Below are positions 6,879-64,000 of a stretch of 64,000 nt of DNA, one piece after another. The stretch's first letter is position 1, and every line of letters begins with the position of its first letter. The notes under the pieces were generated by a model that did no database searches, was not told the DNA's origin, and saw only the letters and a program-made list of their open reading frames with translations. Source of the DNA: Trichoplax adhaerens (taxonomy: Eukaryota > Animalia > Placozoa); the NCBI RefSeq assembly GCF_000150275.1, contig NW_002060966.1:405922-469921 (forward strand). The letters are read 5' to 3'. A program made the translations under genes and the position numbers.

Positions 6879-7628
6879 TTACAATTTACTCGGATTCAAT
6901 GCTAGCATATATAGCTGAATTGAGCGTATACCTTGCCTGGCTATGGATTCAAATGCTTTTTCTTTACCATCGTTTCCGGCTATACTAGCTACATCGATGC
7001 TGTTAATAACTTTCCAATTTGGAAGTACATTCGCATCTCCCTCCAAGATCTTTTCGGTAGTGATACCGGTAATATGGGTATAACCTTGTCGTTGAGCTAA
7101 TGCTACGGAAATTTCGGGCAAAATAAATCCAATACCTATACCAGAAGCGCTCTTAAGAACAGCTAAATCATCAATATACGCTATTCGTTGTGGATCTCCA
7201 TATTCATGCCATGGTGTTGTTTTAAGTAGTTGCACAAGAGCATTTAGAAATGGAGTAAATTTTTGACCACATCGCTCAAATGATTCTTGACCATACGTAA
7301 CATTAATCGCTGTGAATAAAGAGTAGACCAGATTTATTCCTACCATATTTCCATGACTATCTCGAGCTACACTTGAAATGCCAGCATCAGCAGCTATTTG
7401 ACATGTTACAACAATATCTTTAAGATATTCTTCAGCAGACATTCCAATGGCTAGATAGAATGGATTGCGAGCCATACATTGTGAACCAACTTGGCTTGCT
7501 TCAGAAATATCGCTTTTTTGCAATGCATAATAGGTAATTTTATTCTTAGGGTCGTATAAGTAGTCATTGTTGTTATCTATAAATTGCTTACAAAGTTGTT
7601 GATACCAAGCCAAATCTTTTCTAATCAT
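6879..7628 (-). CDS. GNAT-family N-acetyltransferase paralog, 249 aa, C-terminal PTS1 (SKL)
   Basis: Same length as and colinear with 3071-3820 (RKDLAWY, QCMAxNPFY, KTTPWH, LKSASGxGxG, LPNWK, GNDGKE, LNPSKL). Acceptor TAG 5 nt upstream of the ATG (7634-7635). Confidence 0.8.
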   Translation of the reverse strand: MIRKDLAWYQQLCKQFIDNNNDYLYDPKNKITYYALQKSDISEASQVGSQCMARNPFYLAIGMSAEEYLKDIVVTCQIAADAGISSVARDSHGNMVGINLVYSLFTAINVTYGQESFERCGQKFTPFLNALVQLLKTTPWHEYGDPQRIAYIDDLAVLKSASGIGIGFILPEISVALAQRQGYTHITGITTEKILEGDANVLPNWKVINSIDVASIAGNDGKEKAFESIARQGIRSIQLYMLALNPSKL

Positions 7629-11097: not shown

Positions 11098-13774
11098 ATC
11101 TATATATATACCGGTAAAGTTGTGATAAATGTATTCATTTCCAAGCATAGTTCTGCCTTGATTTTACTAGTAACATAATACTACCATCAATTGCTAAATT
11201 ACTTTATAGATTGATAATTTTTTAGGTAACGTTATTCTCCCTGACTAACTAAACTGAATCCTTCGATAGATACAAATACCATAATATCTGCTTGAATTGG
11301 CTATTTTACTTCAATTTTTCAATAATAGTATTAAAAAAGATGACAAGGTGGAAGATCAACTCTGATAACTGATTAGCCAATTTGATGAATCTTTATTGTT
11401 TAAGCTAATTAGTCAACAACTTTCACTGTTAATATTTCAATATCTTGTAAATTTTAACTTTTTACTCTTGGTCAAGTATTTTCATATTCCATAACACAGA
11501 TTTCAGCATTACCTCCCAAACTTATATTTTCATAAAACGACAATAAAATAGCAACGCTGTTATAATACATGTCTCGTTGCTTATGCTTATAGTCATAGCT
11601 TTAAAATTAAATCATTGTCATCTTTACTCATGCAAAATGTTCTACATTGTTTTATTTCTGGCTATACCAATATTAGAATATAATATAGCCGGCAAATGAC
11701 TTAATGATGGGTGAAATATTTATCTTGAGGATATTATCCTCATTTGTTTTAGTTGAATTAAACAGATAAAAGCTCAGCACGCCTTGAATCTTGCTTAAAT
11801 TACGATTATGCCATTATTAAATTAATTAAAAATAGTCAGATTGATGGAATAATTGTTTCAAAATAAATAGATGATGTCATTTAGGTATAACTGCCATGAT
11901 GTTATGCTTTAGATGTCTCTCTATGTGATATGATATGAAACTGTTTGTAATCGGGTGACCATTCCTTTTGAAATCCTTTTAAAGTAGAAGAATTTAAAGT
12001 AGACTCCTTTAGACAGATTATTGCTGTGGATTCGTTATTATTTCTTCTTAATATCGTAAACAGTAATTACCTTATGTATCGGGTACCTTAATCATATCCT
12101 ACACACCGTTGTTCGAACTTGCTTTAATAACCCTTGCAATTTACTATACCGTTACTACTTGTTTATTTACTTGCAGTCTTGTAATTTTGAATAATCTTGT
12201 CGTAATGTTAATGTCTTTGATATTCGATGCATTTGTTGAAAACGATTCATTTTTTCTTACATAAGCGTAAATGTAACTTATAAGGCTAATCGATTCTGGA
12301 TGTAATTCTTGATGCTAGTCTGTTTGATCAAATACAGTGCTAATAAATTGCTATTATAAAAAGCATAGGCAGGGATTAATAAATCGGTTTTTAGCCTTTA
12401 AAAGACCCATATGAACTCGCTAATACATAAAGCATTGGTAGAAATTAATAGAAATAAGCAACTAATGAACAGATTTATATGATACAAATCAAGTAAATAT
12501 GTCAGGTATGGAAGTGTAGCGGGATGATTAGAGGAAGCTGTAGAGAATTTTGCTTATAAATAGGAGCAATCATAGCCACATGTTGATTCTTTTGAAATAG
12601 TAGAATAAAGTGATATACGTGGGATAGTCATATTCTAAGATAGTTTTTAATTTCAGCTTATTATAGAATCGTCATAATTGAAGTTGTAGATTACTGCAGA
12701 ATCTAATATGTTTGCTGGAACTAGTGCATATTTTAAAAAACTCTAAGCATTTTGGATTATAATTGTGGCGTTAAATCAGTTATGACTATCGAGAAGAATT
12801 GTAATATGATTAGTATAAAGACAAATGCAGATTGTAAGCTTTAGATTAGTGAGAGACTAATGCAGATTGTAAGATGGTCATAGCCATAGATTCCGTGGCA
12901 TTAACCCAGCTATGCTTATGGAAATGAACTATCCTATGATTAGCATTTCGCCAATAGATGTGAATCCAGTTGGACATGCATACTAGCATATGATAGAATT
13001 TAGATTTGCTTATTTTATTGGGTTGCTACAATGAGCTTAATGATCATGCGTCCATGTATAGCATTTGACTATAGCCAAAGTATGAAATCAGCTCATAGCA
13101 ACTACGATATTTGAACGTCATAAATGAGAAGGACTAGCTTATAGGATGATTATGCTCCATAAGCTTGCCAATATCCAATAAATTAGCGTCCATCTCTTGC
13201 TATACCTTGAATATAATTCAATTACATTGACTAGGTCAAGGACTATTTACGATACCCATCTAGAGCAATATCTTAAGCTAAATCTTGAATATTTTTATTC
13301 TTCAGCAGCGGATATAATCTCAACTTACATCAATGTAATCGAATTTTATCACTGATAGGATGATGCAGAAACTACATCTACTAAACTCAAATATGTACAG
13401 TTTAATCGTAATATTGTCGATCAGGGAATGATGGCACCGACATATTTTCCAATGAGCTGCATTCGCACATCAAGCCATACGTATAATCTACGCCAGCTAG
13501 CTAACTGATTGTGGCTCTAGAGGTTCTCTATCGAATACCAATAAATTTTCAATGCATCTCTAGTGATGCTCTATGAAAGTGGATAGCCTGATGATGACCC
13601 TCTATCTACGGGTCCGGTCTATAGATTCTCCGTGTATTCTCTAACGATTCTCTATCGATCGATTAGCTGTAGATGCTACTTACGATTTCTGACGATCCTC
13701 TATCTATCTGGAATATAGGTATACGCATAGATCCTCTATGTTTTGGACTATATAGTTTTAATCCATTGATCCTT

Positions 13775-14100
13775 GATGTATTCCCTTGATACCTTTCTCG
13801 ATGTATTCCCTAGAGACCTTTGTCGATGTATTCCCTTGGGATCTCTCTCGATGTATTCCCTAGAGACCTTTCTCGATGTATTCCCTTGGGATCTCTCTCG
13901 ATGTATTTCCTTAAAAGATCTGACTCGATGTATTCCCTAGAGACCTTCTCGATGTATTCCCTTGGGATCTCTCTCGATGTATTCCCTAAAGATCTGACTC
14001 GATGTATTCCCTAGAGACCTTTCTCGATGTATTCCCTTGGGATCTCTCTTCATGTATTCCCTAGAGACGTTTCTCGATGTCATCCCTGAAAGATATTCCA
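13775..14100. repeat. 25-bp minisatellite, about 13 units, with higher-order AB/ABC organisation
   Basis: Core GATGTATTCCCT followed by variants A=AGAGACCTTTCTC, B=TGGGATCTCTCTC, C=AAAGATCTGACTC. Order: A' A B A B C A B C A B A and a degenerate unit. Confidence 0.95.
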
Positions 14101-18000: not shown

Positions 18001-21000
18001 ATTTTTGTTTGCAATTAATACTACCAGTGCCAAGGGTTTCTATTCCGAAGAGATCCCGTTATACAGCATTTGATTTAAACAAGATCCAGTTAAGTAACTG
18101 TAAATAGAGAGGCTTAAAGTTCAATATTGAAGTTTTTAGAATACCTTGCTACTTTGTAATCTCTCAAATTAAATAACATAGTTCTAATGTTATTACTTTA
18201 CCTTACTGATTTATCCTAGTATTTTGTATTTCATGTGGATAATGACGCTCTTACCTATTAGAATGAATTTTTTTTTCATAATCTCTCCAAGCTGCATAGC
18301 TAGCATATTTCTATGTCCTTTAAATGTGCAGGGATAAAGCCTTTGGAACACATTTCATACCACAATCTCTTCCAACCGCATTTTGCAACATTTCTATCTA
18401 GACCTTGTCATATAGAATGCAAGTGTCATATTTATTAGTTTACGGTTTTTATTCAACATTATAGCAGCCAATGTAGATATTAATTGAGCTTCGAAATCTT
18501 GTACATGTTTTAAATGCCCGTATGTATTTGCAATCACCTGGCCTATACTTATACAAACGATAAATACTACTGTATTTAATAAATCTTTACTATCTTTGCA
18601 AACCTTACTTTACATTTATGAGAAGTTATTTTACCATTTATAAATGCAAATTATAAGTAATATCATGAAATTATTGCTCGATAAAAAATGACCGTACTAG
18701 AACTAAACTGCCATTTTACAGTAAAGACATTTTCGTTATCAACATTCTCGTAATTGCTTCGATAATTAATGTATTAATTAGAGTATGGAATAATAACAAA
18801 CAAGGAAGTGATAAATTTGACAGCAATTATAATATAATCAAATTGAGCCTATTGCAGGTAATATTGTAATATGTAAAGTTCTTATAAATATCCCGTAAAT
18901 ACAATTCAAGGCTATATTGAAACCTCTCATTATGCATAGGATAATGGGATAAACGAAAAAGAAAGAAAATTTGCAGCTATCGAACTACATCAAGAAAGGA
19001 CTGAAAATTTATCTTTCCGTGTGTATTCACATCGAAAAATGGTCAAACAGGAAAATATTCTTAATAAAAATAATATGAAAGATAAGGATTGCAATAACAT
19101 CAGGGAATACCGATATTGCCAAGATCTTGATCAAGCTGTTCAATTATATTCATACTTGTATCATCTCTACACAAAGTCTCCACATAATTTGCAGAAATGT
19201 TGGACCACATTGCCTATAAATATTGGTTCTGATAAAGCGAATGAGGTACATTTTTTACTGAATCGATTAAACAAACTAATATCATATTTTGTGATCATAG
19301 TGTTAACGTTTGAAAATTAATAGTATAACTACAGTGAGGTTCTTCAATTTAAATTGTACAGTAGCTCTTAACGTAAGTCAATCATAGCAGTACCATATTT
19401 TGTGTTCATTGCATATATCAAGTTCTCTTCAGTTAAATTTGCAGCAGATGATGAAAATAATTTACCACATTACTGCGTCTATGATATGGATGGGCAATTG
19501 AAATCATTTTTCATCGTTGCAGGTGATGGCTGAATTCCAAGCTAATGTAACTGACCGCAGTTTATCTCAAAATGTAGCCTCGTTAATACAATGCCTATGG
19601 GTAGAAGCAGTCGGCGAGTTACAAAGTATACTCTCAACTTCTGTAAATGAACTTAAAACTACCGATCTTGCGGTTGCAGAAGGCATTTTACTCAAGTTGA
19701 AGCAGAGCGTATCTGAAAGTAACCATGATAGCGTGACTGAGCTTAACAAACAATTTTACGAATTAATTCCTCACATAGATTCTAGTGTATACATCAACTC
19801 AAGACGATTAATCAGTCAGAAGCAAGATTTGTGCCAATTAATTCATGATATGATTACTGTTAATGAAGCAAGCAATTGGCAACTCACTGGCAGCGTTAAT
19901 GCCCAATATAAGGCTCTATCGTGTGATATTCAAGAATTAAATGCAAACAGCGATGAATTTAACTCTATCAAGAATTATATCTTATCATCATTGAAGGAGT
20001 AAATCTAAATACTTTACTTGTTTGTTTGGATCTTATTAAAATTTTAATTAGCATTTGTTGAGTGATGCTGTAGAGGATCGATTTGAGATTTCTTTAAACG
20101 CTTTCCATTTTAGGAATGATTCCACCACGGTCAACATAAAATATATATATTCTGTGGCTCGTAAAGTCGAGAATAAGTTATTTACTCATGAAATGGGTAA
20201 TAAGAAACTATTATTTCATGCTAGTCAAGTAAGTTGAATTGGCTCTATCCCTATTCTTAGCCTAATCTTAATCTTGTGTCCTTTTGAATATGAATGAACT
20301 TACTCTGTTCGTAAAAATGAAATAGCCTAGGAACAAGATAGAAGACTTTTGCAATGAAATTTAAATATTTTTTAATAAATTTACTTTAGGTTAAAAATTA
20401 CGTTGGCATTTTATCAAGGTAATATTTCCAGGATAAAGTATTGGTTAATTGATAATACTGTTTAGTGCAATAAACGAATTCGGTGATGATTTATATTCTA
20501 CATCTGTATACTGTAGGGGTTTACTGTTGCCCAAAATAGTTGTAAGTGAGTATGGTGGCGAAAGATCGGATTCTGGTAATCTTGGTAGTGGAATTTACTT
20601 TGCCGATTCATGCAGGTTTGAAGAACATTATTTTGAGGCTATTACTGATATTCATTGTATTGAGGCTAATTAATATATATTATAATTCATCAGTACAAGT
20701 TTGCAATATTGCAACATCAACAAGAATAATGGCACACGAATGATGCTCGTTTGCGAAGTAGCTCTAGGAAAGAGTAAAGTAAGCAAATTTCGGTCATAAT
20801 TAGACTTTGATATCCTGATCGATTGTCGTAAATATTACGTTGCAAATGTAATATAGATTTATAGAGACCAACATTTAGAGCTTACTTCACCGCCATCAGG
20901 CTATGATAGTGTGCATGGGATTGCCAGCTCTGAAAATGACCTATCCTATTTCACGGTAAGCTTTAAAAAGAATACGAATTAAATAAATTTTCATAATTTT

Positions 21001-24000: not shown

Positions 24001-27000
24001 AAGGGATAATGATTATCTTCATAGTAACAAGCTTTTCTAAAGTATAGTTTTCTTGCCAGAAAAGTTACTAATCATTTCTTTGAGATTTCAAACTACTCTC
24101 ATTGTGGCTACGAAATTTATCTTTGGTAGATTAAGAAGCAGATTGAGAAAGCATTTCAGCCAACATTAACTTCTGTGAATGTAAATTGGCAACAATTTGG
24201 CCAAAGTTATCAATCAAATATGCAGGTATTATTCTGCTTATAAATAGAAGATAAAAGCATTCGGTATCAAACAAAAATTTTAAAACGTAAAAACATTGCA
24301 AATTTGATCTTAGTGAGGAATTGGATTAGTTGTAATTTCAACTTGCATTTATTATCAGGCGCCAGCTGATATTGTAGCTTTATTTAATGGATCACGGCAA
24401 GTAATCTATGGATTTATTCCTAACTGCTTGCAGGTAGAATTATCGTTTGAACTATATGAACTACACTTCAGTTTGTGTATTACAAGCTTTTAGAAGAAAA
24501 TTTTTCAGTATAGTTATTTATACCTTGTAGGCAACCTTAGAGGCAGAAATAGGTGGGACACAAATTTCAACCGTCGTCTCTACTTCGGAATTAAGCAAGA
24601 CATCAGGAAAGGTAACCGCCAATCTTATACTTCTATTTTTATATTATACCTACACTTATACATCGCATCCGATTTACCACTTCTGGTAAAATATAACTGA
24701 ATTCTAATTTCAATTCTTAAATTCTTAGATCTTACACCAGTTGACAGCTCGAGCACTTATTCGCGATTATGATGAAGGTGCATACAATAATGATCGAACA
24801 AATCATGAGGTATATAATACAGTTAAAGTGTTATTAATATCGCTATAATCTATAGCATGAACTGACAATGGCAAATATGATTTGTAAAATTTATTAGGCG
24901 TTGAAGATTGATCAAAAGTCGGCTATTATTGAATTAAGTAAAGACTACTCTATTGTTAGTCCTTTTACAAGCTTTGTCGCTATTGAAGATCGAACTCAGG
25001 TATACGTACGATATCATCGTTTCTTAATACTCGTATTTCAACTCACATATATACCACTTATAGCAATCAATCTATTGCTCAAAATAAATATCAAGGAGTT
25101 AGATTACGAATCAGAGGTGTTCAATCTGGATAAACTTCTTAAAGCCGAGAACGTCGATTATCTACCTTATGTTTCGTGGAGTGGAGATTCGGTATTATAC
25201 TTTAAGTTAATTATTTTTGACTTATTAGCTGAAATATTCGGAAATAAATTTGTTTTAATATGATGTACCCTAGTCTAGAAAATGCTTGCACATACAGCTA
25301 TAGATTACTTATAGCTTCTAAATATTTCTTCTCTTGATTAAGCTGTATTGAAATTGTTTGGAGGCTTACGGTACCTCAGTCGTAACAATAAGATGTGCTA
25401 TAATTAGATAAAATTTCAATATCATCCTTGAACGAAATTTTCGTAGTTTGTAAATTTGTTACACTAGGGTGATTTAATCCTAGGTTGTTGATTTTTGTTT
25501 CTTTTAGAGTCTTGCAGAAAGCCAAGAAATGCCCTCTACTGTTTGCCCTGTAAGTACAACTAGTCTAGACTCCCGCTTAATTTAGTGGAAATTAATTTAG
25601 TAATTTACCTCAGTAAGTATCTATACTTTTATTGTTTATTTACCGTTACGTGGAAGTTATGGATCTTTACTGATGAATTTCTCGTGATTAATTACCTGCC
25701 AATAATATGATCTTCCATAACTACATGAAATGACAACATCAGCCATGAATGGAATTTACTTAAGTCATACAATTATGAAACTAGGACGATGTAATTGTAA
25801 ATTTTTGTGTTGCATACTTTCATTATTTCTTAGATTATTACAGAGACTCAAGAAGGGCTCGGTCTTGATTACGCTGTAAGTATAACTAATTAATGGTAAA
25901 TTTAGTATCGTTTGTGAACATTAATCAACGTCACTAAATATCTATGCTTATTATCAGAATCATTTGTTTTCCTTTGATTAAATGTTATGAATTCTTACTT
26001 ATGGATTTTTTACTTAATTATATGTCACACATAAGTTGGATGGGGTAGATGGGGATTATGAAATGGATACTGATAACTTTGTCCAGGAAGAAGCAGATGA
26101 AGAGAAATATTGTCCTGACTTCTTTTACGATTTTGCAATGGATTTATGCGTATCTGAATATGATGAAAATAAGCGGTCGAATTTTGTTAGTTACGACGGG
26201 TATGTTAAAATAGTGAGAATGGTGCAAGTTTTAGCATCTATTTTCTTTGTATTGTTGTAGAAGCCCAATTGCTGTATAGCACATTAGCTTCCATGCTATA
26301 GTTCCTCTGGTTCTTTTAAGTTATAGTACTGACTTTAAATGTAGCGATTACAATTGTGTAAGGGACTAGGTAGGGGATTATTATTACGCTTATGTCCTAT
26401 TCTAAAGTTTGCATTGGAGTATCAAGGAAGTTGCTGATACTTAGTGCTATATTATTTCGTTGCTTAATTCATCGATGTCATCACATCCTAATAATTAGGT
26501 AGAATCTGTAGTGTGCGTGTAAGACTGATAAGATGACATCTTTTTTAGCTTTTCCAATACTTTATACATTTTCAGCTTATATCGGGATATTATCAGCTAT
26601 GTACAACGTTGATTTTATTAATATTCATCTGATGTCAATAAATTTTTTTGCTATCTACAGTAATGCCGAAGAACGAGAGTATATAAGTACTGCAGAAGAA
26701 CTTTGTAAATTTAATGAGCCCGCATGTTTGGACCTTATGGATTCGAACAGTCTGGAAATGTATGTATGCTGCATTTAGTCCGTTGAATGGCACTATTAAT
26801 AATTGCTATGATTCGCTGCTTTACAGTAAAAATGTTTCGTGTACTTTATCGGCTATCTCTATATAAATTCGGTCTTCTAATTTGTATAGAGTTGGCTCGC
26901 AAAGTACAGTAAACATGAAAATTTTAATTTAGTGTGCAGTGATAGAATTAATCAACATTGCTGGAGTTGTATATCAAGCTGTTTAATAATATTTATGTTA

Positions 27001-30000
27001 CTTACAATTAAATTCAATAACTGATTAGACTCTAGCAAAAAGAATAATAAATTAGTGACAGGTTTACGGCATATACTATTGGATTCAAATGTGTAACTTA
27101 GAGTTGACCAGATATACCTTAGCAGGAGTAGATTTCGAGATTTCGATATAAGAATTATGGTGATCTATGTATGATTTCGTATTAGAATTGCTGGACAATT
27201 TATTAAAACATAATCTAGAGTACATAATATCTTTTGCTTCATCTTACAATTATACGTATAAGTATCGGAATATAAGAAAGAACCTTCAGTTGACTACTTT
27301 CCTTCATTTTAAAGCAGTCAATTTCTCTACAAAACTGTTTACTGCATATGGTTAACCACTGTTTTAGAATATGATTCCGTAGTTAATCCAAATCACTGAA
27401 GTAAATGCAATATCTCGACATAATTTTCAACTTTATTAGATTTGATATATCATAGGTAGCTTAGATTATAATGTTTGAAATGGCGGCATATAATAAATGT
27501 AATTAGTTGTCAGTTAGTACCTAGCCTTTTAACATGGTAATTATAGTAAATTGATATGAAGATAGAATTGTCTGTGTAATTTCACATCGGAGCAGTTGAT
27601 ATCCTATCAATGCTGTGTAATGATGACTTTAATTTCATTACTTTCAATTCTGATTTATCTTCTAATTTCTAAATTCATTAGTGCAATTGCATTAGTATTA
27701 TATATAGCACCGTTTATGTTTATGTCTCACTAGCATGCTCATCTGCTAATATTCTGTTTAGAATCGTTTAGCAATCAAGTTTTAAGATCGGATAATTTTT
27801 CATTTTAATTCAAAAATACGAAGGCTAGTTTGCTATGTTACACGGCCTTGAGGTTTAGTTCTGTTAAATAAGCAGTTCTATGAATCCATTAGTCCAAATG
27901 GCGTGTTGCCATGCAAATTGCATTATAGCTATTACTGCGTAACAGCGTACACCGAAATTTTTTAATTAAGTAAATCATCTAATTTCCATTTAATTATTTA
28001 GTGGGTCTAAGGCAATGTCCATGTCGTCTGATAATTGTAATGAAGACTTTTCGGTTACGGCAAAACTGCCCCATAGGCGACGAGAACTACGTAAGTTTCA
28101 CATTACGCGCAATGTATGTATCTATAACTTACTGCCACTTATTCTTCCTTGAATGGTTACTTGGTAAAGTTTTCGGGATACATTTATCTGAGACATCAAC
28201 AGAGCTGTTTAGAGTTACTCTATATTTTATGTTGACATACCTTATAGCTATGCTCATTAGAGCCTAAATATTATTTTTGCATTAAATTTCTTGCTCTGTA
28301 ACATGAATCTTTAAAGAAATCGGCTATACTAAATGAATCAATTTTTAAACCCTAGGCACTTAACATTTGCAGACGTCTTTTTGAATAGAATCTGTTATAG
28401 TTATATAATTCATTTTTCTTACATTTTCTAGGTGGTAAAGAACTACTGGCCGACAAAGGTATTAATTTGATGGCCAATTCGTTTACTGGATTATAATGGA
28501 ATAATTTGGGATAGCGAGACAAATTAATAGCTTATTGTAGTAAAGTTGCGCTCATAGATATAAATTACCGAATGATACGTTACCATATCTCTCTACAAGT
28601 ACATTTATTAAAGCGAAATTATTTCTGTGTTAATGCTAGCATAAGCTAAATAATTATTGAATCTCTCAGCTGTAAATTATTGCTCTGTTATATCCTGGAT
28701 AATCATTCATTAGATTCTAGGCCGCACGGATCTTCCAAGATTGGTACAGCTTACTGACTATCAGATGACATCATATTTATTTCTATATAAATTTAAGGCA
28801 TTTTAAAGATTTAGAAGTAGCTTTTATTTTCCTTTATTTGAAACTACCACATCTACCTATTGAATTTAGAAGCTGAAAAGTATTTACCCAAGTTTGCTAG
28901 CCTATCTTCGAAAATGCTTAAATCCAGTAAGAGACTAGGCTTTTGTTGATTTTATTCATTGTTTGATTGTCGAGCCAATGCTAACAATTATTCGTGTTAT
29001 TTTGTATAATTTTTACCGCCAGTAGAAGATTCAAAGCCAACTGAAGGTAGTTACTACAAAATGTATTGATTAAACAATGCGCGAAAAGTATTTTTGTTTT
29101 AATCTAGTTTAATAGCAAGAGTTTTTTGGACTTTAAATCCGAAAAGCTCTGACAGAACTTTCTCTTGGAAATTTCTTGCTGAGGATTTCTACTATTACAA
29201 TTTAGTTTCCATAGCAGTATTATTCTGTATTTGTAAAGTAACTTTAGTTATTGGATTTTTAAATAAAAAATTTCACTGAAAGCTTTGCAATTCAATTAGT
29301 AAATAGACACATTCTTATAAAACTTAAGATAGACTTGATATAGTAAAGGACAATCAATTCTTTACTAATTTTTCATTTAATAGATTCTAAGAAGCGAAGA
29401 CGTCGTAAAGTAATGGATCAGTCATCAGGTATTCTGTTATTGACAATTGCTGTAATGCGATGCTCATAGAATAGGTATATGTGCAGGGTAATTCGGAATT
29501 TTTGCTAGTAAATTCGTGAAACATTTTACTAGAGTTATTGATCAATACTTTCTTTTGGATTTCAAATAGCAGCAAGTCTTACTATGCCACTTATAACTTT
29601 CGTTTATATAGCAGTGCTAGTCTCAGTATCATATTGTTATAATTAACAATAGTAATATGGTGGATAATTATTTTGAGTAAAATGATTGCATGATAGATAT
29701 AAGCATTATAAGTGTTGCGATATTCCATTCTGCCATCGGCTTGATAGATTCTGTAGCATCTAAAAGTCTTTTTGGAGGCACTGAGTCTGCTGGTTACTGT
29801 TTCGGTGCCGATACTCTCAACGAAGGTAATTAAAACCGAATTAGGAAAGTATAACTTTATCATTTCTGTAATTTAATTTAATAACACTATTTCTAGAGCT
29901 AATAGAGTATGAATTCTATTAAGCGCTAAAATAGTGAACTCCCACCAACTACAACAGATTTTTATTACTTCATGGACTCTCTGTGCGGTCGATATGATGT

Positions 30001-33000
30001 CAGTCATATACGGCAATTGCGATTTGACATTTTACAATTGGATTAATAGATTCTACGATATTTAAAGGTCTTCTGAGAAGTGCTCAGCCTTCTGGCTTAA
30101 GCTTTGGAGGACGTGCTGCCGGATCAGGTAATTGTAGCCGAATTAAATGCTACATAGTTGTAATGCCGATGAGATAAAGAAATAGCCCTTTAGTTGCATC
30201 GATTTTTTAATGAATTTTTTTTCCCTTTGACACCTATCAGATCGATAGCTGATTTATGATGTTCGATGCAACATAATAATTGTGATCTTCATTTCATAAT
30301 TAAATTGTTACGTTTTACAGCATATGAAAGTCTTCCTGAAAGAACTGAGTCATTTGGTTTTAGTTCTGGTTCGGGTATTTTCATCAAAGGTATTTATATC
30401 TGAACTTGAAAACGTTAAATGTGTTGCTTTCAGTTTGTTGTGACGGTATCATTTCTGTGATTAATTAATTTCCGGTGTCACTAAATCGTGAAGACATTAC
30501 TACACATGACATATAGTAATCACATACTAATCACAACAGTTTTGTATGGCGAATATTATTTTACGCCTTTGATGGCTATCATTTTATGTATTCCTCATTC
30601 TACGTAGTTCAGAATTCTATTCTTGTTAGAATTGTATATCGTAGCTAAAAATTAAAAGCTAGTACACTAAATTTGGCGATATACCAAAAGTACCAATTTG
30701 CAGACTTATTTTATAAATAGCGATTCATTTAGCTCAGCAAATTATTCTATTTTATATCCCCAAATTTCCTTACTTTGATGGCTTTGATAGTGATATCGTA
30801 AAGCATTACTCTTGAAGGTTACTGAATAATTTTATGACTGCATTTCCAATTTGTAGCAACCAATCTCGCTAAACCATTAACAGCTTCCGATGATAGCGGT
30901 ATCAATATTATTATTACTGTACTAGAAATAGGATTTACAGTAACTAAATGATAGATGAATCTACTTTGTGTATTGGTTTCCTTTTTGATGCATTAAAGCA
31001 ATTAATCATATACATCGTAATTGGTATCATGCTGCAGGTCCCGCAGTGCCAAACATTCTTAAAAAACGTGGTTGGCGCCCCGACTTTGCTACTGGTGCTG
31101 CCAATTTAGGTAATAGCATCCAGGATTCGACGGCTTCAAATTCTTTGAAAATTTTTGTTGCTATAACACTATTCGCAAGATAAATTTACTATAAGTTCGA
31201 TTTCTATAAGGTAGGATAAAATATAATACGTCGTATGTAAGGCCAATTTTACCTTTTAGTGATGCCAAGACAAATTCATTGCCAATTTCGTTTCACCTCT
31301 TTGATAGAAATCACTTTTTGTAGTTCGTATTCTAAGTACAGTACTTAGAATCTTGAATTGTATATACGATATTTAGTATACAATTGCAGGACAGTAAAGG
31401 CTACTTCCGTAAATTAGCTATGAACTTAAATCTATAGGATAGTTCTCTTAGTAACATATCATCGCTGTCATGAAATCATTCTCTGCTATGTATGTCCCTC
31501 AATATATCTTTACTTGCTTGTAAAGTATTGCAATCCCTTTTGAATTAGTCTGCCTAAATTTTTTTACTTAGGCATAATTTAAAACACTACACACGAACTA
31601 GCCGTAGTTGTGAACTTACGCTCTCTAATTGTACTAACTATAAGATAGTAATAGACATAGTACTACAAAGAGGGATTTAACAATCATAAATGTCACTTTT
31701 ATGATTCCTTGCCTCCTTTGCGCCAACGGAGTAAAGTGTTTAGTTGCGTTCACTCGTTCGGATTGCAAAATTAGTTTCCAATAATAAACAATTTTTAGCC
31801 TAATGTTAGCGAAAACCGAAACTGTAATTAATGCAAAGTTTTTAAGCTATTATCTTGAAGTTATAAAATGCTTAATAGCTGCAGCACCATTGGAACACTC
31901 AGAGTATCCGCTTCTACCGCCGTCTCTACCATACAACAGATTGCTAACTTCTGACGATCAAGGCAAGTTAATTTATGTTACTATTTAAGAAATTGATCAA
32001 CTATTAATTCAATTACGCTAGCAAGTTATGACCCATTTAGTGAATTAAATAAGATGTTTAAAAATTGATGCTATAAACGTATGACTTAGATGATAATTGT
32101 CATGCATGAGTATTTGGAAGAGGATTCACCTGCAGCACTCTCTATTTATACTTATAATGTATTTTCACGTCTCATTTATTATATCGAAGTGCAATATTAA
32201 ACAGTATCTATATCTATATTCATATCGATGACAGATAGAAACCGATGTACTCAGCAATTCTCAAAATAAAGTATATTATATATGATATTGTAATTAATGA
32301 TGCACCCAGTATTGTGTTACTAGTTATTTGAAATTAGTAGTGGCACGTGCAACTTACAAGTATTATAGCCTGAGGTATTAGTAAATGGCTATTAAAGTGA
32401 ACCGTAGTTAAACTAGTCACTAACGTTGTTCGAATCATTTGCGTGATAATCAATTAGTGTCAATGAATTCATCAGTGCTCCCTTCCCATTAATAGTTATC
32501 ATAAATAGATTTTCTAATATCAATAAATATTGTATCTATTTTCTCCTTGCTCATTGATCGTTTGTAATGAATGCTATTCGTAGTAGGTGTGAAGAAAAAG
32601 ATGCTTTCTCCAAAGTCAATATCGATGTTTGCTAAGTCTCAGCAAAATAGTACCGCTTTTCCTGTAGAGAAAGAAGTACTTCGTGATAGTCGCCGCAGTG
32701 ATGACGTAAATATCGGAAGTGAGCTTTATTCTGCATCAACCGTTTTTCTACCCCTTCCCCCCGCTACCGCAGCTTTGAATCGAACAAGAGGTCAAAAAAG
32801 CACAGCATTTAGGCGTAGTAGAGGTATGGTAGTTACTAAAATAAAATTTTGTATCATATATATGTACGTATTTACATTTAAAAGATTTAGAACATTCAAT
32901 AATCGTGTTGTGTACGTTAACTGAACTTGCAGAATAAATATTATAAATAAGAACGTATCTTTAAAAATTATTCATTTTCAATAAAGCATCAGTTGTAATA

Positions 33001-34468
33001 GAAGCTCAAATTTACAGGCATCAAATTAAAAGAAATAATTTTTTATATAGGAAGGAATTTGCAACTTGCTAGCATATTTTTATTAGTCAGAAGGAGCATT
33101 TAACGTTCTGATTTAATTGTTTTTTAGTTTTAGCGAAAGCGCTAATCGATGAAGTTGACGGTCAAGATAAACCTCCGACGGCGCTACATTTTGGTAGTAT
33201 CGGTACGATCCCCTCTTTTAATTGTATCGTTTATCATAGATTAAAGTAAACCGTATTATGTTTGTATTACAGATCAAATGGATGAATTCAGCCCATCGCA
33301 AGGTTTACTTCAAAAATACTTGTGTCAATAATTTTACGCGTGTATCTGTAAGATTTTAAATTATTCTTTATTGTGAATTTACTATTGATCTTAAAATTTA
33401 GAAGCACACTTTGTGGGTGACTATTCACCTACATCACCATCAGGTATGAAGATAATATAGTTATTAATTAAATCTTAGTTGCTAGTTATACGCTGTTACA
33501 AAATTGGTATTGTTTTTGTTTATGTAAATCATTAAACTTTTGAAGCCGAAGGCAAGTGGACAATTGATTTACCAAAGTCACCGGAGCCCAATTACGAACA
33601 GGTTTCAGAACATAATCTAGAAGCTATGTGCAATATTAACAGTTTAGGTTGATGTAGGAGGTTTTTATTCAATTTTTTGCTTAAGAATAAATTATTACGG
33701 AGTGAAAACATAAAACAGTCAATTAGTTTATGTCCGTACTTAATAATTGGATCTAAGTCACTTATTGCCTATGTGTAATGTTTTAATCAATCGCTAAATC
33801 TATGTCATGATGAATCATTGGTTTAAATAATGAACTACAATCAGATCAAGAATCTACAGTCTAAGGTATGTACGTATGCTATGTTAAGGGTTATGGTGAT
33901 AAGTTAGTCTATAGTTTTACGATCAAGGTAAATCGGCTGGCTACCGTCATTTTATAGGAAGGATATTGGGATTTAACGGATGAAATTGCTGATGTTATCA
34001 ACACAACAAAGGATTATCTACGATCAGTTCTTCAGAGTTGTGGCATTCAATCATTTGGTATAGTACAACGAGTATCGCTAATGCTGGAGTATACTTTGTT
34101 GCATCTGTACTTATATTAATTCTTCTATCGCAATATTTATATGCCTATTAAAATTTGAGTATAGAACTCTGACACTCTATATGGTCGACTACTTCAATGA
34201 TATAATCGTTGTTTTCGTTTATGTAATATCGATGTTTTATATGTGCATTGTATTATTAGGTCTAGCGGCATATAATGACATTGTTCGCATGGTTATAACC
34301 ATGCTTATTATAGTCATGTTCAAGGACATATCTACGCTGACTGAAAGTGTCCATCGAGGTAAGAAATGGTTTACAGGCATGGACAAGAGATATCCATCGC
34401 TACTCTATCGAATGGAATTGGGTCAAAATTGGGAAAGTGCAAAATTGAAACTAATTGGTAAAGCTTAA
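15087..34468 (+). CDS. PARP4: Vault poly(ADP-ribose) polymerase-like protein (PARP4/VPARP), copy A, about 55 exons
   Basis: BRCT exons 15087-15215 (MGIFTNSIFTLQL.., like human MGIFANCIFCLKV) and 17158-17356; then 18028-18088, 18782-18857, 18940-19245, 19523-19998. Catalytic exons 20114-20228 (LFHAS), 20390-20418, 20517-20615 (GLLLPK..GNLGSGIYFADS), 20694-20778 (CEVALG), 20857-20955 (PPSGYDSVHG), 21028-21071 (NNEYVIY). VIT about 21338-22251 (PLTDVH, IEAKYVFPLD, VCGFEAFINNKHIVG, FTVSVGNLP). vWA from 22936 (LDMSNSMK, ISDGH). IIELSKDYSIVSPFTSFVAIEDR; VDYLPYVSW. MVP-binding C-terminus 33546-33601, 33845-33865, 33958-34057, 34260-34468 (LQSKEGYWDL, GIQSFG, YPSLLYRMELGQNWESA). Confidence 0.93.
15900..16750. 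repeat. Degenerate tandem array (about 280-bp period) in PARP4-A intron 1
   Basis: tagaagc.agtatttt...aaaagcacaa...acgaatt...gacgatatga..attaa.gctcgatg at about 16171 and 16448; partial copies at about 15960 and 16731. Confidence 0.65.
28432..33443 (+). other. Run of about 15 symmetric phase 1-1 (micro)exons encoding the PARP4-A low-complexity linker
   Basis: AG/GT-bounded, stop-free, lengths multiples of 3: 28432-28458, 28714-28743, 28870-28926, 29023(29026)-29046, 29384-29428, 29748-29825, 30050-30127, 30321-30389, 30857-30898, 31038-31109, 31879-31962 (GC donor), 32587-32823, 33134-33202, 33273-33302, 33402-33443. Confidence 0.7.
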
Positions 34469-40036: not shown

Positions 40037-40073
40037 AGAACCCACTCAGAGCACAAAGAATTTGATATATAAA

Positions 40074-41198
40074 ATGAACGCTAGCTTTAATGACTTTATT
40101 AACAAGACCCAATCATTTTATAGTAATATTTGGAGCGATATAATTAGACGCACTGAAATCATGCAGCCGGCTTTGACTGTGATGGCCTGCTTATATATTA
40201 TGATCATGGTTATAGCTATACCTGGTAATTCATTAATCTTATGGATTACTTTGGCCAATAGGCACCTGAGGACACCGACAAACTTGATGGTTTGTAATTT
40301 AGCCGTAGCAGGATTGTTGTTAGCAAGCATACAGATACCATTTAAAATTTTTGATCTTTTAAGCCCAATTCAGTCAAGATATTACTATCCGTTTAGCGTT
40401 TCTGTATGCAAGATGACTCTAATGATACCTGGAGTATGTGTTACAGCAATATCGTTTACCTTAATGGCTATTTGCGTCGATCGATATCGTGCGATTGTAA
40501 CTCCGATCAAATTTAAGTTGATAACCCATCCAGTTAAGGTCGCCATTTTTTTGCCATTATGTTGGTTATTTGCTTTCTCGCTTTTGGCGCCTTATGGTGC
40601 TTTTGCAACCATTCACCCATGGTTTGAACAACGCCAAGTTTGTGTTGTAAATTGGATGACTAACCACCATTTGGATATCATCTTCGTTAAAAATAGAATA
40701 GTGTACTTTATACCTTTCTCCAAGATGATCCTCTGGCTATTATTTATTATTCTAGTCTTTCTTGTGCCAACAATCATTATGACAATGTTATACAGCATTG
40801 CCGCTCGAGTGTTGTGGCGTGAAGGGCTAGAAAAGATGCGAATGATGACTTCGATGAGTCTAGAATCCAGTTCGATTAGCCGTGAACGATGTGCTAGCTT
40901 AAGTTTGGATGAGCATCGATTAAAAGCTCGAAAACGAACTATTAAAATTTTGATAGCCTGCTTTATCTTGTTTATTGCCAGCAATTTACCGTATTATACT
41001 TTGCTCACGTTGTTTGAATTTAAATTAATTCAACTTCCAAATTATTTCGTACGTTATGGTCTGATCAATGCATTTGTGCTCTTAAATTATACTTGCATTG
41101 CTTATAATGCCATTATTTATGGCTACTTTAATTATAACTTTCGGCGTAATGCTCCTCGATGGTTTCATTTGAAGAATTATTGTTCACAGTGCAGATGA
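40074..41198 (+). CDS. Rhodopsin-family (class A) GPCR, peptide-receptor-like, intronless CDS
   Basis: Seven hydrophobic segments; TM1 GN, LRTPTN, TM3 C...DRY, TM4 W, TM5 F-L-V-P...Y, TM6 LPYY, TM7 NAIIY-x-x-x-N-x-x-FR. The likely start is the ATG at 40074 (MNASFNDF matches paralog MNNSINDF); the ORF track's 40062 start is TTG. Confidence 0.93.
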   Translation: MNASFNDFINKTQSFYSNIWSDIIRRTEIMQPALTVMACLYIMIMVIAIPGNSLILWITLANRHLRTPTNLMVCNLAVAGLLLASIQIPFKIFDLLSPIQSRYYYPFSVSVCKMTLMIPGVCVTAISFTLMAICVDRYRAIVTPIKFKLITHPVKVAIFLPLCWLFAFSLLAPYGAFATIHPWFEQRQVCVVNWMTNHHLDIIFVKNRIVYFIPFSKMILWLLFIILVFLVPTIIMTMLYSIAARVLWREGLEKMRMMTSMSLESSSISRERCASLSLDEHRLKARKRTIKILIACFILFIASNLPYYTLLTLFEFKLIQLPNYFVRYGLINAFVLLNYTCIAYNAIIYGYFNYNFRRNAPRWFHLKNYCSQCR

Positions 41199-45144: not shown

Positions 45145-46281
45145 ATGAATAACAGCATTAATGACTTCGTGAATAACTCTCAGGCAATCATAAATAATAT
45201 ATCCGGTTATATTGAAAGAATTGAAGTTATACGAACAGCTTTGACCATAATAGCCGTCATATACGTTACGCTAATACTTATAGGTATTCCTGGCAATTTA
45301 TTAATTATATGGATTACTTTGGCTAACAAGCACTTGCGGATACCGATAAATTTATTGGTTTGTAACTTGGCCCTTGCTGGATTGCTAATAGCAAGCTTAC
45401 GAATTCCAATTACAATTTTCGAACTTTTATTCCCCATTCAATTTGCTAATCACTATCCGTTTACTCTTTCAGTCTGCAGATTGTCTGAAATTGTGCCAGG
45501 TGCATGTGTCATAACAATATCTCTTACGTTAATGGCTATTTGTATCGATCGATATCATTCGATTGTACATCCAACAAAGTACAAACTGAGAATGAATCCA
45601 GTTAAGGCCATTATTTTTTTGATATTATGCTGGTTGTTCGCTTTCTCGTTTTGGATACCATATGCATTTTTTATTAGGATTGGTAGCTCTACGAGATATC
45701 GCTATTGCTACACAATTTGGCCTTCAAGTCCGTTATTGGATGTAAGAATTCCTAATTCCGCTTATGGAAATATCATAATACCATACTCAAAAATGATTTA
45801 TTTGCCACTCTATTTCATTCTGATCTTTCTTATCCCAATTACCATTATGACGACATTATATATCATTACTGCTAAAAAATTGTGGCATACAAGGCCTGAA
45901 CATATGTTAACAACAGCGCTTAATAGTACAAAACCCAATGCGACTACTAGTAAACGATCCGATAACATATCTCAGGATGGACATCGACTTCATGCTCGAA
46001 AACGGATCGTTAGAATTTTCATAGCTTGCTTTATCTTATTTATTTTCAGCAATCTGCCATATTACATGATCACAATCTTAATTCAATTTGGATTAATTCC
46101 AGTTTGGAGTGGTAACAGTGAATTTGTACTGTATAGAGTTTTTATTCTCTTGAATTACTCCTGTGTTGCTTATAATGCCATTATTTATGGCTACTTTAAT
46201 TACAACTTTAGACGTAAAGCTCCCCGATGGTTACAGTATAAATGTCCGCAATGTAGATCAGCAAGGCTATCAGCAAAGTAG
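45145..46281 (+). CDS. Rhodopsin-family GPCR, tandem paralog of 40074-41198
   Basis: Same motif set (PGNLLIIWITLANKHLR, TLMAICIDRY, CWLFAFS, SNLPYY, AYNAIIYGYFNYNFRR). Flanking non-coding homology: about 38960-42060 versus 44385-47050. Confidence 0.93.
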   Translation: MNNSINDFVNNSQAIINNISGYIERIEVIRTALTIIAVIYVTLILIGIPGNLLIIWITLANKHLRIPINLLVCNLALAGLLIASLRIPITIFELLFPIQFANHYPFTLSVCRLSEIVPGACVITISLTLMAICIDRYHSIVHPTKYKLRMNPVKAIIFLILCWLFAFSFWIPYAFFIRIGSSTRYRYCYTIWPSSPLLDVRIPNSAYGNIIIPYSKMIYLPLYFILIFLIPITIMTTLYIITAKKLWHTRPEHMLTTALNSTKPNATTSKRSDNISQDGHRLHARKRIVRIFIACFILFIFSNLPYYMITILIQFGLIPVWSGNSEFVLYRVFILLNYSCVAYNAIIYGYFNYNFRRKAPRWLQYKCPQCRSARLSAK

Positions 46282-50534: not shown

Positions 50535-52013
50535 TTATCTTCTTTTACAACCTAGATTTATGCCATTAGCTGGAGACATAGTTATGCCACACCTTAATGG
50601 TAAGGGAACATCTGTTTCTTCAGTAGTAATTAATTCTACACTTCGTAAAATTTTCACAAGGGCCAATTTAACCTCTAGCAGAGCCAATCTCTTTCCGATA
50701 CAATTTCGTGGCCCGTTGCCAAATGGAAGAAATGCGCAAGCTGCGTGCTTGGATTTCTCCTCCGGCGTAAAGCGTTCAGGCATAAACTGCTCTGGATTAG
50801 GCCATAATTTAGGATTATGATGAATAGCATAGATAGGAATAGCAATCATAGCCTCTTTTGAGATCTGATGACCATCAATTGTAATATCATTTTTGCATTT
50901 TCGAGTAACTCTAAATGCGGGTGGATAGATTCTTAATGTTTCCAATATAACCATTTCTAGATAGGGTAAGTCCGATACACAATCATAATCTAAAGGATCA
51001 GTATCGTTAAGTTTTGTTTTAATTTCATGATATAATCGACGCTGTATTTCAGGGTTTGTTGCCAATAAGTAGGTGGCAAACGCTAATGTATTTGCTGTCG
51101 TTTCGTAACCTCCCACGAGAAAGACCAAAGCCTGAGCGATAATTTCTTTGTCGTCTAATTTATCGTTATCACCAGCTTCGATCATCTGTTGTAACATATC
51201 TCTACGGCATGAAACGCCTTCAGACATATTTTTCCTCCTTTCCTTAATTACATTTCTGCAAGTATCCGCTAAATAATTTAGCGAGTTCATAAACTGCCCA
51301 CCAAATAGTGGCTCTAAAATACGAAATAACGGTGTTGCAAATAATAGCAGTATATGCAGTAAACCAGGTGAATTACTCGTTAGCTGACTAGCAGCACCAG
51401 TTAATCTCTTTTCTTGTTCTTTCGATTCAAATTCTATTCCAAAGGCAGAAGCAAGAATAACCTTCATTGTAAATTTGCCACAAATCCTCCATAACTCAAT
51501 AGAACGGCCTTCTTTTTCTGCGTTTAATAACATTACAACAATTTCATTACTAGCCTTGTCAACACAGGGGAAAGTGAGCTTCAACTTTGATGTGCTAAAT
51601 GTAGGTATTAAAATATTCCTTACACGCTTCCAGTCGGTATCTCTCAATTCTACTAACGTTTTATTAAACGGTTCTAAATTATTAGCGATACCGAAACGGT
51701 TAGTGAAATTGGAGAAGTCCTTGATTAAGACTGATTTCAATACTTCTGGGTCGCCAATCCAGATGGTAGGGACGGAAAAAAATAAAGTGCCATACACATG
51801 ACCGTATTTTTCTTGTCTTTCTACTTGGACTAAGTGCTGCGAAGCCGATTTACCATCCAACAAGTTGCCAAAAAGGGGTTTAGGACGGGGACCACTTAAT
51901 CCCAATTTTCTCAAATGACGATAAGGTTTAAGGTAGTACTTGTAAAAACACCAGGCCAGAATTGTACCTGATATTAATAAGATTTGCGATATTGATAACT
52001 GCAACCCAATCAT
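50535..52013 (-). CDS. Cytochrome P450, clan 3 (CYP3A/thromboxane-synthase-like), intronless CDS
   Basis: N-terminal membrane anchor, GPRPKPLFGN, WKRVR (WxxxR), I-helix GGYETT, ETLR (ExxR), PERF, heme motif FGNGPRNCIG. ATG at 52013; the ORF track's 52019 start is GTG. Confidence 0.95.
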   Translation of the reverse strand: MIGLQLSISQILLISGTILAWCFYKYYLKPYRHLRKLGLSGPRPKPLFGNLLDGKSASQHLVQVERQEKYGHVYGTLFFSVPTIWIGDPEVLKSVLIKDFSNFTNRFGIANNLEPFNKTLVELRDTDWKRVRNILIPTFSTSKLKLTFPCVDKASNEIVVMLLNAEKEGRSIELWRICGKFTMKVILASAFGIEFESKEQEKRLTGAASQLTSNSPGLLHILLLFATPLFRILEPLFGGQFMNSLNYLADTCRNVIKERRKNMSEGVSCRRDMLQQMIEAGDNDKLDDKEIIAQALVFLVGGYETTANTLAFATYLLATNPEIQRRLYHEIKTKLNDTDPLDYDCVSDLPYLEMVILETLRIYPPAFRVTRKCKNDITIDGHQISKEAMIAIPIYAIHHNPKLWPNPEQFMPERFTPEEKSKHAACAFLPFGNGPRNCIGKRLALLEVKLALVKILRSVELITTEETDVPLPLRCGITMSPANGINLGCKRR

Positions 52014-53998
52014 GTTCACAGTTTTCCTGTACTGTATACTGAATTTCTAGTTAAAAAAAGTCATAAAATACTCCAGGAAGATATTAACACGTTATTACTT
52101 TTTCTCTGATGAAAGTAAATGTTACAGGATGCTATATAATATGAAGTTAATGCTTAAAGGCGATAATAATTCTTCAATCTTCTAGTCTATGCAGGTTTTA
52201 AGATTGATAAATTGATTTCAATTCTGGGAGATTTTGTAAACTTTATAAAGGCATTAATTTAATACAGGTATAAAAGCTTTAGTGTTTTTTTACGTCGATG
52301 AGTAAATATTCTAGGGGGTAGAATCTAGTTTTAGATTAAAACTTGAAGATGATCGACGAATTTTCCTTTGGCTAATTCAGCCAGATTTTCAGGCTTGATA
52401 AAACGATTTTAGTCTGAGAAAAGTTGTAAATATTTAAGGTAAGAATGGCGGAGAACGTGTATGATAGGGAATCTATTTTCCAATAGTGAATTTTATAGGC
52501 TTGTGCCGTTCCAATTACCAAGGCAGGAATTTAGCAAAGCTAATAGCTTACTTTAGAAGACTAAATAACGATTTTCTATGTAACGATTTACGTTTTTCAA
52601 CATTAACTAAGCAATAAGCCAATGCACAGGATCAACTTTATCTCGCTACCAAGATTGCTAGTGCATACAGTTAAATGTACTGTATATCAGTTCTTTTACG
52701 CTGCTAAAAAGAGATCCAGAAGTGGACTGGAATAAAGAAACCTGTAGATAATATAACTGTACTATTGGAAGAATACAATTTGATCTACTTTAATACTGTG
52801 TCAATAATGGACTTAGCCTATATACTGGAATAACTACGATACTTCTTGCTCGTTTATTCGCGATTTGATAGCACATTTCTGCAGATTTTAGCTTATACGA
52901 GTATGGCTATGTGCTCGGCTGATAGAATATCCTTTACAGTCTTTTAGCTTATTCCATCTGTCCGAAGGAAAGGTAATTTTATGCAAAAGATGGTTGCTTT
53001 CTAAGTTCCTCGTATCAAAATATAGTGTAAATCATATATAGCACATTGCCATGTATGGGCCCTGTTGATGCTTCTATTTGTATACAAATACTGCAATGTC
53101 AATAAATTAAATCATTCGACATCGTATAACCTTACCTCCAACTAATATCTTGCATTTTACTATCAAAGGCCTGACTAATATAGCGATATCCTCCACTTAG
53201 TATCAATAGAAACTAGACGTTTAAACTTACCAGTATAGGTCAAAGATGTCGCTATTGGCTCTTACTTGGTATCAATTGCTGAAATTAAATAGGGTTCGAA
53301 TTTCCCCCATTTAATGAATGATCCTACGATTGACGAGTATACGCGTATGTCTGCATGTTGATAGCTCTATGGCTACAAATTACTGCTATTCTATCTGTGA
53401 TGGAGGGTTAATGATTTTACAGAGGCAGATCTATAACCAATTAGAAATTGATAACAAGGCATTGCGTAAGAAAATAGATTCTTTATCATAGACTACAACT
53501 GTGAGATAGTTACGCTAGAAAAGGGTGTAAACTGTTGTGAAATAATGTAAGAATAATGAATACTGTGACTAGTTTCGCTTATCCTCAATCTCTCCATAAA
53601 TCTATAATCATCATATACCCAAGAAATTGACAACGCCTCATCATCACCACAAAGTCCAGCAATACAGGCTATGGTTTATAATAAGATGTAAAGCTACTGC
53701 AAGATTTCATCTACTATCTTGCAGACTGCAGAAGTAGAAATTAATTTCTATTTAATGAATTAAATCAATGGACAATATGGATGAATAAGTATCCTTGTTT
53801 ACCGCAGTTGCAAGCTAGCTAGCTTTCATGTTGATCATGTCATAAGTAGTAGCAGTTGCTCGATGCCGAAAGTAAAGTAAATAAAATAAAGGATAGGATG
53901 TAAAATTACTGCTGTGAATGTAGAAGAAACTCTGTCTGTTGATAGTAAAAAAAATAACAGCAACGATGAATACGTAAGCTTAATAACTCTAGCTTGAA

Positions 53999-63774: not shown

Positions 63775-64000
63775 GTGCCGTTATTACATCTATGAATTAG
63801 TTATAAAGTTTGTTTGATTACCAACATTCTATTCTATGTTGATACGTCATAAAAAAGAAATTTCAATTAGGCAAGAGCCGTTATTGCCCGTAATCGTAGA
63901 CAAGCAGTTGTAACCACGATCGTTCCTCTAGTCTAGAAATGAAGTAATTAAAATATGAGTTAAAATGAGAAATATAAGATAATTAATAAACACTGTATAA

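Follow-up and report, generated by a model that had tools for sequence, protein, structure and literature searches.

We report here that one gene of Trichoplax adhaerens carries, in a single stretch of its coding sequence, an unbroken run of 15 consecutive exons which are all alike in reading phase. The gene, which we assign to PARP4 and refer to as copy A, lies on the plus strand of a window of 64,000 nucleotides (nt) (contig NW_002060966.1, positions 405,922 to 469,921 of the forward strand; the window is the whole stretch of DNA analyzed, and positions are counted from its first letter). The 15 exons extend from 28432 to 33443; each has a length divisible by 3, begins and ends in phase 1 and is open in frame, and together they are bounded by 16 consecutive phase-1 introns. 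This cassette forms the central 990-993 nt (~330 residues) of a tether of ~533 residues between the ITIH-like/vWA region and the MVP-interacting domain, a position anchored by matches to the human protein. We lean towards the interpretation that the uniform phase is a historical by-product of the way in which the tether has grown, rather than a regulatory device.

The exon chain was derived from contigs of four runs (four studies) placed on 27960-33950. Three of these, termed X9 (recorded as RNA), X4 and X8, contain joints of the GT..AG type, which means that spliced complementary DNA is present, and the fourth, X5, lacks joints in this interval and looks like DNA. After cut correction, the following joints were obtained (given as last position of one exon/first position of the next): 28090/28432, 28458/28714, 28743/28870, 29428/29748, 29825/30068 (in X4), 30127/30321, 30389/30857, 30898/31038, 31109/31879, 32823/33128, 33202/33273, 33302/33402, 33443/33546 and 33601/33845. 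Six more joints were not itemized, among which four are expected, namely 28926/29023, 29046/29384, 29825/30050 and 31962/32584. The third of these was recovered from loose contig ends of X9, and the fourth follows from a 665-letter X9 contig that spans exons 10 to 18 with no skip and whose length equals 15+84+240+75+30+42+56+22+101 exactly. As to the first two, bin depths fit the inclusion of 28870-28926 and 29023-29046 in the transcript, making both joints probable. An ab initio listing of open AG..GT stretches, which returned 1653 candidates, was uninformative and was replaced by the RNA joints.

In order, the cassette exons measure 27, 30, 57, 24, 45, 78, 78, 69, 42, 72, 84, 237/240, 75, 30 and 42 nt. 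Joints on both sides were found in X9, X4 and X8 for exon 1 (28432..28458), exon 2 (28714..28743), exon 8 (30321..30389), exon 9 (30857..30898), exon 14 (33273..33302) and exon 15 (33402..33443), and the inclusion joints of exon 13 (33128..33202) were likewise present in all three. Exon 3 (28870..28926) has its 5' joint in the three runs and a predicted 3' end, with a bin depth that fits its inclusion, while exon 4 (29023..29046) is predicted from its AG/GT flanks, its open frame and the bin depths of X9, X4 and X8; a possible second acceptor at 29026 would shorten the latter to 21 nt. For exon 5 (29384..29428), the 3' joint 29428/29748 occurs in three runs and the 5' joint is one of those not listed. 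Exon 6 (29748..29825) is supported by joints and by DNA similarity to exons 7 and 8, with which it forms a tandem triplet; in exon 7 (30050..30127) the acceptor at 30050 comes from X9 loose ends and the donor at 30127 from three runs, the flanks having been checked. The joint that closes exon 10 (31038..31109), 31109/31879, is present in X4 and X8 and, by loose ends, in X9. Exon 11 (31879..31962) is spanned by the 665-letter X9 contig, and exon 12 (32584..32823; 240 nt, or 237 nt if read from 32587) has its donor joint in three runs and checked flanks. Flanks are AG and GT throughout the cassette, except for a GC donor after 31962; the GC-AG intron that starts there (31963-32583, donor GCAAGT) ends in a TAGTAG tandem acceptor. 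The chain is entered from an exon of 89 nt (28002..28090, phase 2 to 1), whose joint to exon 1 was found in three RNA runs and whose loose ends lead back to 26759, and it is left through an exon of 56 nt (33546..33601, phase 1 to 0) with both joints in three runs.

Essentially this arrangement, a run of about 15 frame-preserving exons with phase 1 at both ends in the linker of a PARP4 homologue between the vWA region and the MVP-binding domain, had been put forward in a preliminary description of the DNA made from its letters, and both the RNA joints from three studies and the human PARP4 matches at residues 1155-1182, 1583-1617 and 1660-1705 bear it out. Most of the exon lengths given there stand; the exon entered as 69 nt starts at 33128 instead of 33134 and thus measures 75 nt, and the one entered as 237 nt is 240 nt long in X9. 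The term 'microexon' used for the set is a loose label: 4 of the 15 exons are no longer than 30 nt, 7 are no longer than 51 nt, and the largest has 240. That the open reading frame track misses almost all of the cassette was also correctly noted, and the same holds for the public gene model. Finally, the folded domains had been said to use mixed phases. To define their introns, we used 27 blocks conserved between copy A and its tandem paralogue, copy B, and counted an intron only where the two copies agreed in residue offset and phase. The 20 introns predicted in this manner are distributed 14/3/3 over phases 0/1/2, and phase-1 introns accordingly amount to 16/16 in the cassette versus 3/20 in the folded part (Fisher p = 1.3e-7). 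The non-conserved tether as a whole (25000-33957) comprises 23 exons with 1599 nt and 533 residues, in the phase order 0-0, 0-0, 0-0, 0-2, 2-2, 2-1, fifteen times 1-1, 1-0, 0-0.

By its sequence, the host gene, in which domain matches occur on single exons from ~17.1 kb onward, is T. adhaerens PARP4 copy A. All searches were conducted exon by exon and without a joined spliced protein. With Pfam, the exon at 19517-20002 matched PARP_reg with 30.5 bits (cut-off 26.8) and the exon directly after it a fragment of the PARP catalytic domain (E 0.018); one exon gave 50.1 bits for the VIT domain, and another, conserved in copy B, a weak BRCT_2 match (E 0.0032, 18.2 bits, cut-off 27.3). The BRCT exon of copy B carries an N near position 56640 of the window. 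Individual exons of the vWA region and of the tether did not reach Pfam significance, and one vWA exon compared with the PDB produced chance matches only; a DxSxS motif (LDMSNSM) is readable in the vWA region. The last conserved ITIH-like/vWA exon before the tether (24898..24999, plus strand, ending in phase 0, splice flanks checked) is 74% identical to copy B and matches human PARP4 1155-1182 (E 0.0036). On the far side of the tether, the first exon of the MVP-interacting domain (33958..34057, plus strand), conserved in copy B, has human PARP4 1583-1617 as its best PDB match (E 0.061), and the last one (34260..34468, plus strand, including the stop codon), 56% identical to copy B, matches human PARP4 1660-1705 (E 0.0024). 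The two latter matches are weak yet collinear, and the arginine aligned to human R1689 is kept in both copies. PARP regulatory and catalytic parts, VIT followed by a vWA/ITIH-like region, and a C-terminal MVP-interacting domain thus occur together, as in PARP4 or vault PARP (clade 5).

In human PARP4, the MVP-interacting domain, delimited as MINT at 1562-1724 (PMC12280208) or as MVPID at 1570-1724 (PMC10450202), docks the enzyme inside the vault. Searching the genome (an assembly of 105.6 Mb in 1414 contigs) revealed two MVPID-bearing genes only, copies A and B, and an MVP gene with four Vault repeats, and the duplication of T. adhaerens PARP4 is already in the literature (PMC4245714). The tether would join a BRCT-PARP-VIT/vWA module to a C-terminal MVP-interacting domain, and PARP4-A is a putative resident of vault particles.

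The tether itself is rich in Ser, Ala, Lys and Pro. Within the cassette, 14.5% of the residues are Ser and 60% are disorder-promoting, a peptide composition that suggests a disordered tether. The human counterpart (~1183-1582) occupies the same position in the protein, between the matched segments; it is described as disordered, connects the ITIH-like region with the MVP-interacting domain, evolves fast and in primates has sites under positive selection at 1504-1521 (PMC10450202). No similarity in sequence was detected between the Trichoplax and human tethers. When the largest cassette exon was compared with 1.84 billion protein representatives, no homologue emerged beyond the gene's own fragment model in T. 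adhaerens, TRIADDRAFT_61583 (XP_002117526.1), the sole genuine public protein match; a second match, to a repeat protein, was judged spurious. Word-indexed searches with this fragment model and with the 609-nt exon of copy B described below found nothing further, within the length window that limits both searches. In the genome, a DNA search found the cassette in single copy. Of the eight exonic differences between samples (among them 32763, 32785, 32791, 28039 and 28058), six are non-synonymous. Composition and non-synonymous variants fit what one would expect of a loosely constrained, fast-evolving linker, in keeping with the account given of human PARP4 (PMC10450202). Individual exons encode recognizable short motifs, such as the basic stretch KKRRRRKV in the 45-nt exon 5 and YSPTSPS in the 42-nt exon at 33402. 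The triplet exons (29748-30389) encode FG-like motifs (SLFGG, LSFGG and SFGFSSGSG).

Exons 6, 7 and 8 are similar to one another at the DNA level, and the similarity extends into the introns, over ~45 nt before and ~25 nt after the exon; against shuffles, exon 6 scored z 8.8 with exon 7 and z 12.7 with exon 8. In exons 2, 5, 6 and 7, the TAG acceptor is followed by ATTCT as the first five letters. A second set of duplicates is found further upstream in the tether, where two 42-nt exons of phase 0-0 (25508-25549 and 25834-25875) are 71% identical over 59 nt. Because these exons are paralogous, exon-intron units were evidently duplicated in tandem to build part of the tether, and copying a 1-1 exon yields another 1-1 exon. 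The divergence of these duplicates is too great for Tandem Repeats Finder, which did not detect them.

Copy B follows in tandem on the plus strand, at 56500-64000 and onward beyond the window (L002:1-6630). The preliminary description had suggested a comparison with its linker. In the slot held by the cassette in copy A, copy B has one open exon of 609 nt and phase 1-1 (L002:5233-5841), rich in Pro and Ser, followed by a 59-nt exon of phase 1 to 0 and then by the conserved 100-nt MVPID exon; its 203 open codons, in DNA of 32% GC, are far beyond chance. The tether of copy B also holds an acidic open frame (L002:2921-3475). While the folded parts of A and B are 50-85% identical, comparing the A cassette with copy B by tblastn and tblastx yielded no credible collinear similarity between the tethers.

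Sequence alone would permit any subset of the 15 exons to be left out with the frame intact and no stop created, as had been anticipated from the phases; no junction codon can be a stop, since no cassette exon ends in T. The RNA contigs of X9, X4 and X8 nevertheless present one dominant, all-inclusive chain. A single skip was found: exon 13 is bypassed by the joint 32823/33273 in X4 only, in a contig with a depth of 93 versus 31 for the including contig. This skip contig carries substitutions at 32763, 32785 and 32791 which X9 and X8 do not have, and owing to these three linked single-nucleotide polymorphisms (SNPs) the skip looks like a property of a variant allele or strain. As the genome contains the cassette only once, the divergent contig does not stem from a paralogue in the assembly. 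Two haplotypes of exon 12 are present in X4, in a ratio of about 3:1. In addition, two alternative acceptors were noted. The acceptor of exon 7 is at 30068 in the X4 joint, giving a form of 60 nt, versus 30050 in X9, the two being 18 nt apart and in frame, and the TAGTAG acceptor at 32582-32586 allows for an exon 12 of 240 or 237 nt, of which the 665-letter X9 contig fits 240 only. Rare forms are lost from contigs, which are also unsuited to measuring levels. Unspliced contigs cover intron 31110-31878 in X9, X4 and X8 and intron 29429-29747 mainly in X9, at depths near those of the spliced contigs; these represent either retained introns or abundant pre-mRNA. A search of the introns with Rfam gave no match.

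How, then, did 16 introns in a row come to share one phase? According to the explanation that we favor, the cassette would sit in one ancestral phase-1 slot, the one that is filled by the single 609-nt exon in copy B. Additions to such a slot, whether by tandem exon duplication or by recruitment of intron sequence as an exon, would survive only if they were 1-1, and repeated additions of this kind would lead to a same-phase run. A loosely constrained tether rich in Ser, Ala, Lys and Pro may tolerate such gains and losses of exons, and in-frame length variants, as seen in the allele-linked skip and in the alternative acceptors of 18 and 3 nt, would arise easily. Several points weigh against this account. 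Paralogy is detectable in just 3 to 5 of the 15 exons, and the layouts of the two copies would fit intron loss in B as well as exon gain in A; the exons of copy B were called from sequence; regulated skipping at a low level could escape the contigs; and disorder was judged by composition. In a rival scenario, which we regard as unlikely but worth stating, one large 1-1 tether exon, as still present in copy B, was split in copy A by many intron gains at AG/G proto-splice sites; where Gly, Ala, Asp and Glu codons abound, as in this tether, most such sites would lie in phase 1. The 609-nt exon is what this scenario would predict for the unsplit state, and of the 16 exons followed by a phase-1 intron, 14 have G as their last letter, leaving split codons of the form G/NN. 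Gains in one phase to the extent of 16/16 would, however, go beyond any bias known for proto-splice sites. Moreover, the similarity among exons 6-8 reaches into the flanking introns, as expected for duplicated units and not for a split exon, and no residual similarity links the A cassette to the B exon. The trivial explanation that a long intron merely happens to contain these segments as open AG...GT stretches has in its favor that AT-rich DNA yields many AG/GT pairs, with 1653 open candidates in the span; it can be dismissed for practical purposes, as RNA contigs from three studies have GT..AG joints at these exact boundaries.

The most far-reaching suggestion of the preliminary description was that of a combinatorial splicing system, in which regulated skipping of exon subsets tunes the length and motif content of the PARP4 tether inside the vault. 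Its proposed RNA check, carried out here with contigs on 27960-33950, confirmed the exon structure and did not uncover combinatorial skipping. In line with the suggestion, every subset is in frame with no junction stop possible, RNA contigs contain one skip (33128-33202), the 18-nt acceptor and the TAGTAG acceptor, and short linear motifs (nuclear localization signal (NLS)-like, FG-like and YSPTSPS) are each confined to exons of their own. Human alternative exons are enriched in symmetric exons that encode disorder (PMC3632108), and the all phase 1:1 layout of tropoelastin serves cassette-like splicing (PMC12554196). Against this stand the single dominant chain in three RNA data sets and the restriction of the skip to one run, on a contig whose linked SNPs point to an allele or strain difference, not to regulation. 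Probably at most about two of the joints not itemized could be alternative, and exon duplication explains the common phase without selection for skipping. We therefore consider regulated combinatorial splicing improbable. Slightly less probable still is that the cassette is under selection as a regulated selector of tether length and motifs, with isoforms differing by cell type, state or allele; if this were true, isoforms devoid of the NLS-like exon, the FG-like triplet or the YSPTSPS exon could alter the reach of the catalytic part or the retention of the enzyme in the vault.

Runs of symmetric exons have precedents. The closest analogue is tropoelastin (ELN), which likewise has a flexible low-complexity region made of many short exons with all splice sites in phase 1:1, and exons that can be removed cassette-like in frame (PMC12554196). 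Growth by exon duplication is a further common feature. Unlike tropoelastin, whose whole gene is phase 1:1 and for which extensive alternative splicing is documented, the Trichoplax gene follows this rule in the tether of an enzyme only, is mostly phase 0 elsewhere, shows little skipping, and has no sequence kinship with it. The resemblance to the micro-exon genes (MEGs) of schistosomes, for which exon skipping was reportedly documented by DeMarco et al. in 2010, consists in runs of short symmetric exons in multiples of 3 that could give rise to isoforms by skipping. The products of MEGs are small secreted proteins, encoded nearly entirely by exons of 3-81 bp (bioRxiv 10.1101/2023.06.21.545858), whereas the cassette has exons of up to 240 nt (also 84, 78 and 75), belongs to a large intracellular multidomain enzyme and is rarely skipped. 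Membership in the MEG family was therefore rejected on grounds of exon sizes and product type. Unlike the human situation, Trichoplax has two tandem PARP4 copies with very different gene structures in the tether. More generally, symmetric exons that encode disorder are favored for insertion, tandem duplication and alternative splicing (2013, PMC3632108). That study describes a statistical trend across human exons and ours an unbroken run of 15 in one gene, with a paralogue for contrast; the association of exon symmetry with disorder is clearly exemplified by the cassette.

The remaining exons of the tether on the plus strand complete the picture. Upstream of the cassette, four exons are predicted from open frames and AG/GT flanks: 25096-25191 (96 nt, 0-0), the duplicated pair mentioned above (25508-25549 and 25834-25875, each 42 nt and 0-0) and 26036-26199 (164 nt, 0-2). 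They are followed by 26661-26759 (99 nt, 2-2), whose donor at 26759 was identified by loose ends at 28002 in X9, X4 and X8 and is the sole RNA-supported boundary in this part (25096..26759). Downstream, the last tether exon (33845..33865, 21 nt, 0-0) is attached by the joint 33601/33845 in three runs, and a loose end of X9 leads on to 33958. Elsewhere in the window, the minus strand encodes two intronless paralogues of 249 aa at 3071-3820 and 6879-7628, both ending in SKL, which the preliminary description calls AANAT-like acetyltransferases. Two further intronless paralogues, of 378 aa and with the look of seven-transmembrane receptors, are on the plus strand (40062-41198 and 45145-46281), and an intronless open frame of 494 aa on the minus strand (50535-52019) resembles a cytochrome P450, with FxxGxRxCxG near its C-terminus. 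Overlapping open frames on both strands at 13770-14100 share a repeated peptide motif (SMYSLETFLDVFPRDLSRCIPLG-like), which suggests a short tandem DNA repeat.

For the public record, the consequence is that an RNA-backed structure can replace an 'uncharacterized protein' of 148 residues. TRIADDRAFT_61583 (XP_002117526.1, 148 aa; 32600-33650 in the window) has its start at a Met inside exon 12 and continues through exons 13, 15 and 16, thereby omitting the RNA-supported 30-nt exon 14 (33273-33302), and reads into the intron after 33601. That gene set thus lacks the tether and, with it, what connects the catalytic portion to the vault-docking domain; the structure given here would give back to an early-branching animal a full-length PARP4 that includes the vault-docking domain. 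What we describe follows a gene-building pattern already known, and a regulated role as a splicing switchboard would be hypothetical. The tandem paralogues provide a natural contrast, 15 same-phase mini-exons versus one large exon in the same tether slot, that may be useful for understanding how disordered linkers grow by exon duplication under the constraint of intron phase. For vault biology, the finding means that the PARP4 tether of a placozoan has as much freedom to vary as that of primates.

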